From NCBI GenBank assembly GCA_033442325.1, contig JAWQFM010000002.1:324403-388402 (forward strand): a DNA stretch of 64,000 nt, written 5' to 3'. Of this stretch, positions 44,501-48,518 are shown in pieces. Position numbers and translations under genes: made by a program. The notes beneath the pieces are model-generated. The model did no database searches. It was not told where the DNA came from and saw nothing but the letters and a program-made list of their open reading frames with translations. Position 1 is the stretch's first letter. Every line of letters starts with the position of its first letter. This DNA comes from Salpingoeca rosetta (lineage: Eukaryota > Protista > Choanoflagellata).

Positions 44501-47500
44501 TGTGCACGATGTACAAGACGTCAACCGCACACAAGACGATGAAGACGATGAAGAAGAAGAAGAAGAAGAGGAGGAAAAGCAGTGCATGTCGCCAGAGTGT
44601 ACGCTGACCAAGCTGCAGATTCTTGTGTTTGCTCTCAAGCAATTGCGCACCGCACCCCGCAACACCTGCCTCGGTGGCCTTGTGGACACCCTCATTCTCT
44701 CTTGCATTCAGGTACATGTATGTGTGTGCGCATGTGTACAGGTGATTGGAATTCCGTGAGTGTGAGAGTGTGTTTGAGTTGCAGCTGCTGTGTGTGAATG
44801 TGAAACAGCAGCTGTACGATGGGCCGGAGGTCTATTCCCACTCCCGCCACACTTCTGGCCTGCTGCTTGTTGGTCTTCACGCCAGTCGAATTCCCGACAC
44901 TCACGTTTCGTTTGCGCCCCACCATTGCAGAGTGCCGATGCCGACATTCGCAACGCAGCCGTAAAGTGCCTTGGGCTGTGCTGCATTGCTGACAAAACAT
45001 TTGCGCAGGCGCACCTCCTGCTCCTGCTCCAAGTCGCACAGGTCAGCGGGATGGTCATGTGCAAGGAAAGGCTGGCCCACAATGACACAGTTGTTCTCGA
45101 AAGTTCCGCTGCTGTGTTGTCTCTCTCAGACACACACACGCACGCACGCACACTCTCACTCACACTCACACCCTCACTCACTCACTCACTCACTCACTCA
45201 CTCACTCACTCACGCTCACACACACACACACAGGTGGATCAAGAGGCGCTTCAGCTGACGGCACTGAAGATTCTGTTTGATCTTGTGCTTGCGTTTGGCG
45301 TGGCTACGCTCACGGGCAACGCGAAGGGGAGCGAGACAGATAACGATGGCGACAGCAGCATGAGCAGCAGGCAATCAGATTCAGAGGACACGGAGCAAAC
45401 TGCGCCAGCAAACACACAGGTGATCACTGTTGACTGTTGCCATGTCGTCTTATCGCGATGGCTTGGAGGGGGAAGGACGGAGATTCGTGCACACTGTTGA
45501 CTCACACACACACGCCCATCACGCACGTATCAATTTGTTGTGGCAGACAACGATCATTCCCGTGTTGAAGCGATACCTGGACAGTGACGATGACAATCTC
45601 CGCTGCGCTGCGGTGGAGGGCTTTGCCAAGCTGCTGCTGCACAATCACATCACGAGTGCGCAGATCTTCTCGCACCTTGTCATCCTGTACTTCAACCCAC
45701 TGACAACGGAAGACGTGACGCTCCGCCAGTGTCTGAGCGTGTTCTTCCCAGCGTACGCGTTCTCCTCCCGTGCACACCAGGTGAGCAAAGAGGGGGGAGG
45801 GGCGTGATGGGGGCGCACTGATATTCGTCGCCGTGTTGTTGTTGGTGGTGGTGCCGTTAGGGGCAGCGCTGTTGTGGTTTTGAGACAGGGAGTAAGTTGA
45901 CTGCTGTGCGTGTGGGGGGGGGGGTCATTTTGCTGTTGCGGTGTCGTTGTGGCACTCGTGCACGTCTCCACTCGTGGAGCTTGACGATTCGACGTCGCTT
46001 ATTTCGCGCCGTGCTGGTGTTGCAGGATGTGATTGAGGAGGCGTTTATGCCGACAATCCGCACGTTTGCGCTGGCGCCAAGGAGCTCTCCGCTGTATTCT
46101 GTCAAGTTGCAGGATGCTGTTGACCTGTTTGTGTATCTCACGGGCGCAGTTGACGGATCGGAGGTGGGCCTGCCTGCCACCGCTGATCTTGGCTTGCATC
46201 ACAGCGTCGCCATGACCATGGCAAACGAAGTGCTGTCCGAACCAGAGGGCGCGGCCGTCAAACCCCTGTGCAAGGTGTGTGTGTGTGTGTGTGTGTGTGT
46301 GTGTGTGTGTGTGTGTGTGTGTGTGTGTGTGTGTGTGCATGCTGTGTGTGTGTATGCATGCATGTTATTTGTGCGTGGCTTCGGTACTGTTTGTGTGCTT
46401 GTTTGGTTGCTTGGATGGTGTGTTTCCTGTGTTGTCAGCAGCATTGAAGTCATGTTCATGTACCGTCTACAATCAATTCCTCATCTCAAACCCGTTTCGT
46501 CGTGTACAGGCACTGTCAATGCTGGACTATTCTGCCATGGATGATGCAACGCGGCAAGCGCTGTTTGTGTTGGGCGAAAGCATGCTGCAACACGTGGATG
46601 ACCGCTTTGCCAAGGGCTCATTGCGCAAGGTGTGAGGATGTTTGTTTGTTTGTTTGTTTGTTTGTTTGTTTGTTTGTTTGTTTGTTTGTTTGTTTGTTTG
46701 TTTGTTTGGGTTGTTTGCTTGGTTGTTTGGGTTGTTGGCTTGGGTTGTTTGGGTTGTTTGGGTTGTTGGCTTGCTTGACTTGATTTGCTTGTTTGTTTTG
46801 GAAAACGAGCGTTGGAGGTTTACATTGTCAGGTTTGTGGATGGTTGTACTGCTCACATGTGCGCTCAACAAACTTGATGCATCATGGATTCAGATGATGG
46901 ACGCGTTGAATGTTGACGGATCAGGTAAATGTCTTTCTTCCGTGCAAAGCCACTGCGACTGTGCATACCAGGCACTTGTGCACATGATGTGAACAAATTG
47001 ACTGCGGCGTTGTTCATGCTCACAAGTGAACCTTGTGTGCCTTGCTTGTAACTTGGCCATGTACAGGCATCAGCGAGGAAGCCCGAGAAGCATTGGCAGA
47101 AAAACAAACCGCACATCAGGCAACGCGCGCGGAAGGTGCGTGTGGTTGTTGCGCATGTTGCAATTGCTGATGTTCACGACACCACCCACACTCACACACA
47201 CACACTCTCTCTCTCTCACTCACACACACACTGCACAGACCTTCGGGAAACGGGCCTGGTTGCCGCTCCAAGCAAACGCCAGCGGGCATCCCGTGCTGCC
47301 AAGGCACGCGCAGCGACCACGCTCAAGCAGAACATGCGTGCCGACTCTGCTGATGCCTATGACGGCGCTGCAAGTGACATTGCAGATGATGACGACGAGG
47401 AGGAGGAGGTGCACAAAGTGGCATCGGCATCACAGTCGCAGCGTCGCAGGCAACCCCAACGCCGGGCCCGTGTTGTGGACGACAACGAGAGTGATGAAGA

Positions 47501-48518
47501 AGACATTGACGACCTTCTCTCAGCATCAGAGCAGGAGCAGGAATCAGATGCAGCCGAACAAGAGGAGGAAGAAGATGGCGAGGAGTTTGAGATTGAGCAG
47601 GTGCGTATTTGTGCGCATGCACGTACATGTGTGCGTGTGCGTGTGTGTGTGTGTGTGTGTGTGTGTGTGTGTGTGTGTGTGTGTGTGTGTGTGTGTGTGT
47701 GTGTGTGTGTGTGTGTGTGTGTGTGTGTGTGTGTGTGTGTGTGTGTGCAAGTGTGTATATTTTATTGCATGAGTTTGTGTGTGCATCTCTGCGTCCTGAA
47801 GCAGCGAGTTCGCGATATCACCAAGCTGACGTTGTTTTCTGTCTTCCACATCTGGGGTTCAGCTGATGAAGGTGAAGCACAAAGGGCGCAAGCGCTTCTT
47901 CCAAGTGCGCTGGAAGGACACCGATCCAAGGTGAGGAAGGGGCGTTGGAACCCGGACACATTTTGCGTGCGTGCGGATGTGTGAGTATGTGCGTGTGTGT
48001 GCGTGTGTGCGTGTGTGTGTGTGTGTGTGTGCGTGCGGATGTGTGAGTATGTGTGTGTGTGTGTGTGTGTGTGTGTGTGTGTGTGTGCGGTGTGACCTGG
48101 TTGTCGTATTTGTGCATGGACACTGCTGCTTGGTGGTGCTCACGCAGCCATGCCTCATGTGTGACTCTGCCTGCTGTTCCTGCTTCCAGTGAGGACACAT
48201 GGGAGCCCGAGGAGAACCTGCCGGAAGACCTTGTTGCCGGGTTTGACGAAGCTCGCAAACAAGACAAGGAGAATGTTCGCCGTCAGCGGTCACGAAAGGC
48301 CAAGCCACAGTGCGTGCATGGCAGTGTTGTGTTCGTGTATTAGTGTGCGTTAGACATGCTTATGTGCTCTACTCATGTGCTGCGATGAATTCTCCTTGAC
48401 TCGCTGATTTGGCTGTGGTGCACTGCTTCTCTTAAACAGGCGAGGCAAGGGCGGCCGTGCTGCCTCGGCGAGCCACGACACGGAGATTGATGTGCTGTTG
48501 ATGAGCGATGATGAGTGA
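41579..48518 (+). CDS. NCAPG: Condensin I subunit CAP-G (NCAPG/Ycg1) with a C-terminal chromodomain
   Basis: ARDKAVRFRACQ, RIRDKIPVVRVQAINALSRLQ, RSRDVKDVVRK, AVEGFAKLLL, LVILYFNP and LRQCLSVFFPAYA. Last exons encode EEFEIEQL..FFQVRWKDTDPSEDTWEPEENL. Stop at 48516-48518. Confidence 0.9.
46640..46710. repeat. (TTTG)n tetranucleotide tract in a CAP-G intron
   Basis: Direct read of the sequence. Confidence 0.9.

Follow-up and report, generated by a model that had tools for sequence, protein, structure and literature searches.

The locus examined here raises the question of whether condensin I of the choanoflagellate Salpingoeca rosetta carries a chromatin reader within one of its own subunits. 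CAP-G, together with the kleisin, forms the DNA anchor of condensin; to our knowledge, the choice of chromatin sites by condensin I is poorly understood, and the known connections between condensin and histone marks are indirect and for the most part those of condensin II. A sequence-only reading of the window (the whole stretch of 64,000 nucleotides that was analysed) had proposed that a CAP-G gene is fused in frame to a chromodomain. Positions given below are those of the window, and all features lie on the + strand.

The locus encodes the sole CAP-G of S. rosetta

The CAP-G gene spans 41579-48518 and is the sole Cnd3/CAP-G gene in the S. rosetta genome; a profile search across the whole 55.4-Mb genome returned Cnd3 matches at this locus only. 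The HEAT/Cnd3 body of CAP-G (condensin I subunit 3) is encoded by exons 1-12 (41579-46629), which start with an ATG-initiated open reading frame at 41579 and whose borders were guided by an orthologue. Exons 1-6 are located at 41579-42230, 42487-42596, 42827-42911, 43154-~43300, ~43540-43712 and ~43951-44147, and exons 7-12 at 44384-44711, 44931-45041, 45234-~45400, ~45530-45780, 46026-46274 and 46510-46629, with approximate borders marked by ~. The introns of this body keep the frame, are bounded by GT..AG and agree with the orthologue, and the Barroeca CAP-G (P0161) is colinear with the locus from 41585 to 48515 by tblastn.

The Cnd3 domain (PF12719) falls in the exons within 44931-46274, where Pfam analysis of individual exons gave E values of 6.9e-15, 1.4e-28 and 1.7e-5 (55.5, 100.4 and 24.6 bits against a cut-off of 25.8) and covered profile positions 33-282 of 288; the orthologues score 221-232 bits for Cnd3. 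HEAT matches were below the Pfam cut-off on S. rosetta exon 1 alone and above it in the orthologues. Exon 1 as query retrieved 1036 relatives, of which those with names are annotated 'condensin complex subunit 3', and the S. rosetta CAP-G protein itself was absent from the results of both protein searches for relatives. On these sequence relationships, the gene is assigned to the orthologues of NCAPG, and not to CAP-G2 or other HEAT proteins.

The CAP-G frame continues into chromodomain exons

Two small exons with AG/GT borders and an open frame, at 46894-46924 (31 nt) and 47067-47135 (69 nt), join the HEAT body to the tail. The second aligns with P0161 residues 810-831, and the peptide MMDALNVDGS of the 31-nt exon resembles, by eye, MIAEAQVDGS of Barroeca. 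The tail proper begins with exon 15 (47239-47600; frame and RNA), which aligns with P0161 residues 836-926 and encodes a basic patch (KRQRASRAAKARA), a disordered acidic linker that contains an IDDLL motif, and strand 1 of the chromodomain (EEFEIEQ, 47580-47600). A phase 0 intron of 262 nt follows (47601-47862), with GT..AG borders, a (GT)n run at 47641-47747 and an RNA depth of zero over 47748-47839. Exon 16 (47863-47930) encodes chromodomain strands 2-3 (LMKVKHKGRKRFFQVRWKDTDP) and aligns with P0161 residues 916-937; exon 17 (48190-48309) encodes the TWEPEENL turn and the C-terminal helix of the chromodomain, followed by a basic stretch; and the coding part of exon 18 (48440-48518) encodes basic residues, the motif EIDVLLMSDDE and the TGA stop. 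The 3' untranslated region (48519-48989) displays continuous RNA depth, and contigs end in it at 48961 and 48989.

All seven terminal exons (46510-46629, 46894-46924, 47067-47135, 47239-47600, 47863-47930, 48190-48309 and 48440-48518) are bordered by AG/GT, and when joined they form a single open frame of 282 codons that contains the RASRAAKARA motif as well as the acidic linker and chromodomain peptide and ends with TGA at 48516-48518. The chromodomain is located within the disordered tail, where the basic patch and acidic linker precede it and the old C-terminal [IV]DxLL motif follows; in its EIDVLLMSDDE form this motif does not vary among 8 choanoflagellate tails, and the motif is also C-terminal in CAP-G from outside the choanoflagellates. 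The RASRAAKARA patch was considered as a histone-tail mimic for the chromodomain, and this was rejected because the patch sequence is not conserved among orthologues.

The fusion is transcribed as one mRNA

Transcript evidence was drawn from two raw RNA-seq runs and two transcript contigs, with reads placed on 47748-49100 only. The joint 47930>48190 (GT..AG) was found in 13 and 4 reads and in 2 contigs, and the joint 48309>48440 (GT..AG) in 13 reads and 2 contigs. Before position 47860, 29 reads and both contigs carry unaligned letters identical to 47568-47597, near the end of exon 15; because the end of this exon is thus seen directly ahead of 47863, these sequences also establish the junction 47600>47863. 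RNA depth was zero in all three introns, and, as the first mate maps to the - strand, the RNA derives from the + strand. The borders, the open frame and these joints bear out the fusion first read from the letters, exon by exon.

The contigs, of 2399 and 2265 nt, reach 1658 and 1552 nt upstream of 47860 and, if spliced as modelled, would extend into the Cnd3 exons; for the junctions upstream of 47239, the evidence is the colinearity of the orthologue and the length of the contigs. Furthermore, RNA runs of three further studies contain a fraction of 0.43-0.49 of the words of 45400-49000, near the exon share of ~0.5 in the gene model. These data indicate that the chromodomain fusion is transcribed and spliced in frame as one mRNA.

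It might be argued that the fusion is an artefact, in which a neighbouring CAP-G gene and a small chromodomain gene were joined by read-through, a chimeric contig or exon chaining. No read in the region of placement (47748-49100) connects exons upstream of 47239 with the tail, and a contig covering two genes is no proof of a single transcript. However, the junction between exons 15 and 16 occurs in 29 reads in perfect agreement, exon 15 carries on the CAP-G frame and aligns with the Barroeca CAP-G tail, the old CAP-G C-terminal motif comes after the chromodomain, and the data are explained without a separate gene or start codon context. The identical single-ORF build also recurs in independent transcriptomes from four named species and several environmental assemblies (see below), and an artefact is considered extremely improbable.

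The tail domain is an HP1/CBX-type chromodomain

In S. rosetta three exons together encode the domain, and the scans were run on single exons. By itself, exon 17 matched Pfam Chromo at profile positions 30-51 of 53 (17.3 bits, cut-off 25.1, E 0.0046), and exon 16 gave no match; the orthologue chromodomains score 42-55 bits against the same cut-off (PF00385). Against a profile of choanoflagellate CAP-G chromodomains, exons 16 and 17 matched complementary parts, positions 8-25 and 31-51 respectively (28 bits for exon 17), and 18 of the 23 PDB sequence matches of exon 17 are HP1/CBX chromodomains. The AlphaFold check that the sequence-only reading had suggested was performed with the Barroeca orthologue tail, and its AF2 model displayed a chromodomain fold, with strands at 34-43, 46-53 and 62-65 and a helix at 71-84 (pLDDT 76-87). 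When this model was searched with Foldseek, the best matches were all chromodomains (MPP8, CBX7, CDY1, SUV39H1 and HP1; TM ~0.8, rmsd 1.1-1.8 A), and identity to solved methyl-H3K9/K27 readers is 34-42%. Taken together, Pfam on the orthologues, the exon-wise profile matches and the modelled fold of the Barroeca orthologue identify the CAP-G tail domain as an HP1/CBX-type chromodomain, in keeping with the HP1/Polycomb pattern noted earlier.

A Pfam scan of the full-length orthologues at E <= 0.01 found no chromoshadow domain. A word search with Barroeca residues 760-998 returned nothing at E <= 0.001, a search in which a 50-residue domain cannot reach significance among 5.8 billion sequences. 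A predicted complex of the Microstomoeca chromodomain with the unmodified H3 tail (residues 1-45) scored 0.03, a value that weighs on neither side of the question of binding.

The domain could have come from a chromovirus (Ty3/gypsy integrase) by exonisation into the CAP-G tail, with a transposon-like targeting role retained. At least 23 Chromo matches occur in the S. rosetta genome, several of them identically scored as in repeated elements, and fusions of chromodomains with transposons are common in eukaryotes (bioRxiv 10.1101/2021.11.30.470311). However, Pfam detected no integrase or other transposon domain in the CAP-G orthologues, the best structure and sequence matches are the cellular readers MPP8, CBX7, CDY and HP1 at the identities given above, and the ancestral cage was complete; such an origin appears very unlikely.

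The fusion is widespread among choanoflagellates

Co-occurrence of Cnd3 and Chromo, which had been proposed as a check, was found above the Pfam threshold in full-length proteins from the transcriptomes of Barroeca monosierra, Microstomoeca roanoka, Salpingoeca infusionum and Bicosta minor, so that the fusion is conserved as a single ORF in at least 4 other named choanoflagellates. For Cnd3 plus Chromo the values are 8.2e-11 in Barroeca, 5.4e-13 in S. infusionum and 9e-15 in Bicosta, and Microstomoeca and four environmental relatives likewise have both domains. All chromodomain-bearing CAP-G proteins and S. rosetta exon 1 form one clade (SH-aLRT 99). Public transcriptome proteins already show the architecture in their precomputed Pfam annotations, and our literature search found no paper combining choanoflagellates, condensin and chromodomain.

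None of the ~110 animal CAP-G proteins listed contains a chromodomain, which agrees with the earlier statement that human CAP-G has no such domain; the chromodomain is also absent from the CAP-G of Corallochytrium and Balamuthia. Within the choanoflagellates, no chromodomain was found in the complete ORF of Didymoeca CAP-G, and the Monosiga brevicollis gene model (XP_001743654.1) contains at most a weak remnant (6 bits) in which all three cage residues are missing, which indicates that the domain is dispensable in some lineages. Because the fusion is common to craspedid and acanthoecid choanoflagellates, it was most likely gained in their common ancestor.

The aromatic cage is altered in S. 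rosetta

In HP1-type single chromodomains, all three cage residues normally contribute to binding. The S. rosetta cage consists of F (47586-47588), W (47911-47913) and T (47920-47922), and so falls short of three aromatic residues; the earlier observation that two of the three are present was confirmed by the codons, by alignment with relatives and by RNA reads, none of which mismatches the genome at the cage codons. Among the 8 choanoflagellate tails, no variation occurs at cage positions 1 and 2, and position 3 is Y/F in 6; Y-W-[Y/F] is the cage of most relatives, Y-W-H is that of Barroeca, and F-W-T occurs in S. rosetta only. The residue preceding position 3 is D in S. rosetta only and a conserved G elsewhere. 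Since most relatives retain a full cage, it can be argued that the domain functioned as a methyl-lysine reader in the ancestor; and since T stands at the third cage position and D in place of the G before it, methyl-lysine binding in S. rosetta is probably weaker than, or different from, that in sister species with a full cage.

These same residues permit the reading that the fusion is real but that the S. rosetta chromodomain no longer reads methyl-lysine, and either makes another contact (an unmodified histone tail, nucleic acid or a protein partner) or is being lost. Both substitutions are unique to S. rosetta and confirmed by RNA, and the missing domain in Didymoeca and the cage-less remnant in Monosiga are consistent with loss. 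However, the EIE strand, VRW, TWEPEENL and the helix are well kept in S. rosetta, both chromodomain introns are spliced in frame, and an unconstrained domain should gather stops and frameshifts, of which this one has none. Moreover, a two-aromatic cage is not proof of loss, as CHD1 reads H3K4me3 with just two aromatic residues (PMC3229088). We regard a non-reading domain as a credible, if doubtful, alternative to a reader of reduced strength.

With respect to possible ligands, H3K27me3 is present in S. rosetta (PMC12572184), and the literature search found no demonstration of H3K9 methylation in this species. In the H3 encoded by the S. rosetta genome, K9 lies in an ARKT context and K27 in an ARKS context. 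A Pre-SET (PF05033) profile search of the genome gave no match, in a search whose controls were also silent.

A proposed histone-mark reader in condensin I

The earlier suggestions that condensin I here may read chromatin directly, and that a two-aromatic cage may shift its specificity, appear reasonable. We propose, as the somewhat favoured reading, that S. rosetta has a condensin I CAP-G with its own histone-mark reader, in which the chromodomain would tether condensin I to methylated H3, with a hold that is perhaps weaker in S. rosetta than in its relatives. The putative methyl-lysine reader, on a flexible tether of ~150 residues, would keep the CAP-G/kleisin anchor near nucleosomes with methylated H3, the candidate marks being H3K9 (ARKT context) or K27 (ARKS context), and this tethering would bias the sites at which condensin I loads or stays. 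More tentatively, the condensin I of the choanoflagellate ancestor may have acquired an HP1-type methyl-H3 reader and loaded or anchored preferentially on chromatin marked by H3K9me or H3K27me, such as retrotransposons and silent cell-type genes. If true, loop extrusion or compaction would be coupled directly to heterochromatin marks, and a natural 'Rosetta-stone' fusion would link a reader to condensin I in one polypeptide in animals' nearest relatives.

A chromodomain in the DNA-anchoring CAP-G, conserved across the sister group of animals, constitutes a clean natural experiment, in which one small domain offers a test of whether condensin I can be guided by the methylation of histones. The species pattern provides a built-in comparison of a full cage, T (S. 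rosetta), H (Barroeca) and a missing domain (Didymoeca), and S. rosetta is genetically tractable.

Comparison with known systems

The protein shares with condensin I CAP-G/NCAPG/Ycg1/Cnd3 the HEAT-repeat body, the Cnd3 domain and a single copy; animal NCAPG proteins are the best relatives of the Barroeca orthologue after the choanoflagellate proteins (E ~1e-125). Like CAP-G elsewhere, it has at its C-terminus a disordered basic and acidic tail, closed by an acidic [IV]DxLL-type motif, and it differs from the animal, Corallochytrium and Balamuthia proteins in the chromodomain inside that tail. With the chromodomains of HP1/CBX, MPP8 and CDY it shares the three-stranded sheet plus helix and the Y/F..W..TWEP..NL pattern; however, its host is an SMC-complex subunit, its third cage residue in S. 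rosetta is T, and the likeness to HP1/CBX proteins is confined to the chromodomain, as CAP-G has neither a chromoshadow domain nor another HP1/Polycomb partner domain.

In a comparable arrangement, of which MSH6 with Tudor/PWWP is an example, certain lineages have a histone reader added to a conserved protein that handles DNA (bioRxiv 10.1101/2024.10.15.618488), although the host protein and reader type differ, and the resemblance is one of analogy, not homology. Guidance of condensin by histone marks has its closest precedents in Drosophila, where Cap-H2 binds the chromodomain protein Mrg15 via an Mrg-binding motif (PMC4426367), and in mammals, where condensin II is reportedly anchored by H3K4me3 (PMC5479651). 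Those cases concern condensin II and depend on separate proteins or HEAT surfaces, whereas the putative choanoflagellate reader is covalently part of the CAP-G of condensin I.

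CAP-G gene structure and transcription

The CAP-G gene, encoding condensin I subunit 3, occupies 41579-48518 (+ strand) in eukaryotic DNA whose introns are short, of GT-AG type and often filled by (GT)n runs. A chain of coding segments with HEAT repeats and the Cnd3 domain begins at ATG 41579, and Cnd3 (Pfam PF12719) was matched on three consecutive exon pieces at 55.5, 100.4 and 24.6 bits, covering profile positions 33-282. When the entire assembly (55.4 Mb) was searched in six frames, Cnd3 matches were confined to this locus and no chromodomain-free CAP-G paralogue was found; therefore, this is the sole CAP-G gene. 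The sequence-only reading had proposed an in-frame fusion of CAP-G to an HP1/Polycomb-type chromodomain through GT-AG exons, and this chain held up: AG/GT borders were present at all seven terminal exons (46510-46629, 46894-46924, 47067-47135, 47239-47600, 47863-47930, 48190-48309 and 48440-48518, + strand), which join into a single frame open until the TGA at 48516-48518. The RASRAAKARA patch, the acidic linker and the chromodomain-like peptide are all in the joined frame exactly as claimed. Nearly every CAP-G intron carries a (GT)n or (GTTT)n microsatellite (e.g., 46270-46340, 46640-46700, 47641-47747 and 47985-48090), that of intron 47601-47862 being a 107-nt (GT)n run at 47641-47747.

Raw reads of two RNA-seq runs, together with two transcript contigs from other studies, were mapped over 47748-49100, and splicing of the chromodomain exons was borne out. 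The GT..AG joint 47930>48190 was seen in 13 + 4 reads and 2 contigs, the GT..AG joint 48309>48440 in 13 reads and 2 contigs, and RNA depth was zero in all three introns of the tail. Furthermore, 29 reads and both contigs carry, directly ahead of 47860, a 30-letter stretch that equals 47568-47597 at the end of exon 15; therefore, the 47600>47863 junction is also supported. The first mate lay on the - strand, so the CAP-G RNA is + strand, and no read disagreed with the genome. The contigs (2399 and 2265 nt) extend 1658 and 1552 nt upstream beyond 47860; judged by length and if spliced as modelled, the 1658 nt would reach exon 44384-44711 and span the whole Cnd3 domain. At the other side they end at 48989 and 48961, marking the CAP-G 3' end. 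In runs of three further studies, 0.43-0.49 of sampled words of 45400-49000 were present, the modelled exon share being about 0.5. That the fusion is a chimeric artefact is very improbable.

A tRNA-Leu gene (anticodon TAG, 49166-49249, - strand) lies about 180 nt past the CAP-G 3' end, between CAP-G and a Brr2-like gene starting near 49953. Upstream, also on the opposite strand, is a 1113-codon open frame (35130-38471, -) that is low in complexity and rich in Ser/Ala/Thr/Gln.

Fold and placement of the chromodomain

The domain was scored exon by exon. Exon 17 alone (48190-48309) matched Pfam Chromo positions 30-51 at 17.3 bits (E 0.0046), under the 25.1-bit cut-off, and HP1/CBX chromodomains made up 18 of its 23 matches among PDB sequences. 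With a profile built from the domains of eight relatives, exon 16 (47863-47930) aligned to positions 8-25 and exon 17 to positions 31-51. Modelled with AF2, the Barroeca tail folds into three strands plus a helix (pLDDT 76-87); the model superposes on the MPP8, CBX7, CDY1, SUV39H1 and HP1 chromodomains at a TM of ~0.8, with an rmsd of 1.1-1.8 A and an identity of 34-42%; the claimed domain type is thus upheld by structure prediction for this orthologue.

Every tail aligned keeps an acidic [IV]DxLL motif after the chromodomain (EIDVLLMSDDE in the window, within 48476-48518). The motif also occurs at the C-termini of CAP-G from distant eukaryotes such as Balamuthia, and among the relatives it was noted in P0046, P0074, P0088, P0107 and P0146; it has the look of a short linear motif of the CAP-G tail that has not been described before. 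Since it is shared with distant CAP-G yet distal to the chromodomain, the domain was inserted inside the disordered tail. Gain by read-through into a downstream gene was ruled out, as this widespread motif follows the domain. Vertebrate CAP-G has a weaker form, LNLA[EQ]FLNED, and the linker in the window holds a further copy of the [IV]DxLL motif, IDDLLS (~47506-47523).

Distribution of the fusion

A search of 1.8 billion representatives with the 216 residues of exon 1 returned 1036 CAP-G-like proteins. The closest, named through cluster look-ups, are all choanoflagellate: Barroeca monosierra (P0161, 998 aa), Microstomoeca roanoka (P0166, 1088 aa), Salpingoeca infusionum (P0163, 1117 aa), Bicosta minor (P0151, 1146 aa), Monosiga brevicollis (P0084, 933 aa) and Didymoeca costata (P0089, 1060 aa). 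Nearest of all are Barroeca and Microstomoeca, the latter 76% identical on exon 1, and the Barroeca protein is colinear with 41585-48515, chromodomain exons included. Cnd3 and Chromo co-occur above Pfam cut-offs in Barroeca, S. infusionum and Bicosta (Chromo E-values 8.2e-11, 5.4e-13 and 9e-15), and precomputed annotation places PF00385 also in Microstomoeca and the environmental proteins P0167, P0168 and P0252/P0285. By the same annotation, Chromo is absent from the ~110 animal CAP-G proteins listed with these; it is likewise absent from Corallochytrium, Helobdella and Balamuthia CAP-G, and only 1 of 55 near-full-length representatives from the exon 1 search (Bicosta-type P0106) carries it.

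A maximum-likelihood tree was built from 65 CAP-G proteins (quick method, LG+G4, window represented by exon 1 only). In it, every chromodomain-bearing CAP-G and the window exon 1 fall in one clade (SH-aLRT 99), which also includes Monosiga and Didymoeca. The complete Didymoeca ORF, an acanthoecid CAP-G grouping with Bicosta, is without the chromodomain and keeps two [IV]DELL motifs; the domain was apparently lost in this lineage. The public Monosiga gene model (XP_001743654.1) ends in 25 residues, EILSSRQASGKTEYLVRQAGD, that weakly match chromodomain strands 1-3 (6 bits) with all cage residues replaced; this may be a decayed domain or a model truncated before its last exons. In the simplest history, the domain was gained once by the ancestor of choanoflagellates and was later lost or decayed.

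Aromatic cage and histone context

In the eight-tail alignment, Y at cage position 1 and W at position 2 never vary, and position 3 is occupied by Y or F in six of the eight and by H in Barroeca. The window has F (47586-47588), W (47911-47913) and T (47920-47922), in agreement with the earlier description, and D replaces an invariant G just before position 3. This change is confined to S. rosetta, given that Microstomoeca, its closest relative, retains the complete cage. Repurposing or decay of the domain in S. rosetta is possible, if on the doubtful side; a two-aromatic pocket need not be dead, as two aromatic residues are enough for CHD1 to read H3K4me3 (PMC3229088).

Canonical H3 of this genome has ARKT at positions 7-10 (Thr10), an uncommon sequence that has been reported from S. 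rosetta (PMC12572184), with H3K27 in a normal ARKS context. H3 genes lie at C22:739967, C32:367975 and C32:368466 (L005-L007) and C5:489484 (L004; C-numbers are contigs). A fourth, intron-containing copy has ARKS and then a divergent GNIGAKAPRKK tail, and one C32 copy is apparently disrupted after residue 24. H3K27me3 marks retrotransposons and cell-type genes in S. rosetta, and H3K9me3 could not be profiled (PMC12572184). Chromo was matched in at least 23 places in the genome; several matches share identical scores and sit in very long open frames, a pattern suggestive of chromodomain-bearing retroelements beside cellular chromodomain genes. A transposon origin of the CAP-G domain, with a targeting role retained, is very unlikely.

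A candidate tethered reader

Altogether, CAP-G and the chromodomain form one architecture that is expressed and conserved. Because Ycg1/CAP-G, bound to the kleisin, anchors condensin to DNA and HP1-type chromodomains read methyl-H3, we infer that a reader tethered flexibly by ~150 residues would hold condensin I near methylated nucleosomes. For the CAP-G-chromodomain family this mechanism is rather likely; full reader activity in S. rosetta itself is less so. The fusion is of moderate to high interest, since a tractable organism allows it to be tested directly. A literature search found no publication joining choanoflagellate, condensin and chromodomain, and condensin goes unmentioned in a survey of reader architectures (bioRxiv 10.1101/2021.11.30.470311). 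The known links between condensin and histone marks, Cap-H2 with Mrg15 (PMC4426367) and condensin II with H3K4me3 (PMC5479651), are indirect.
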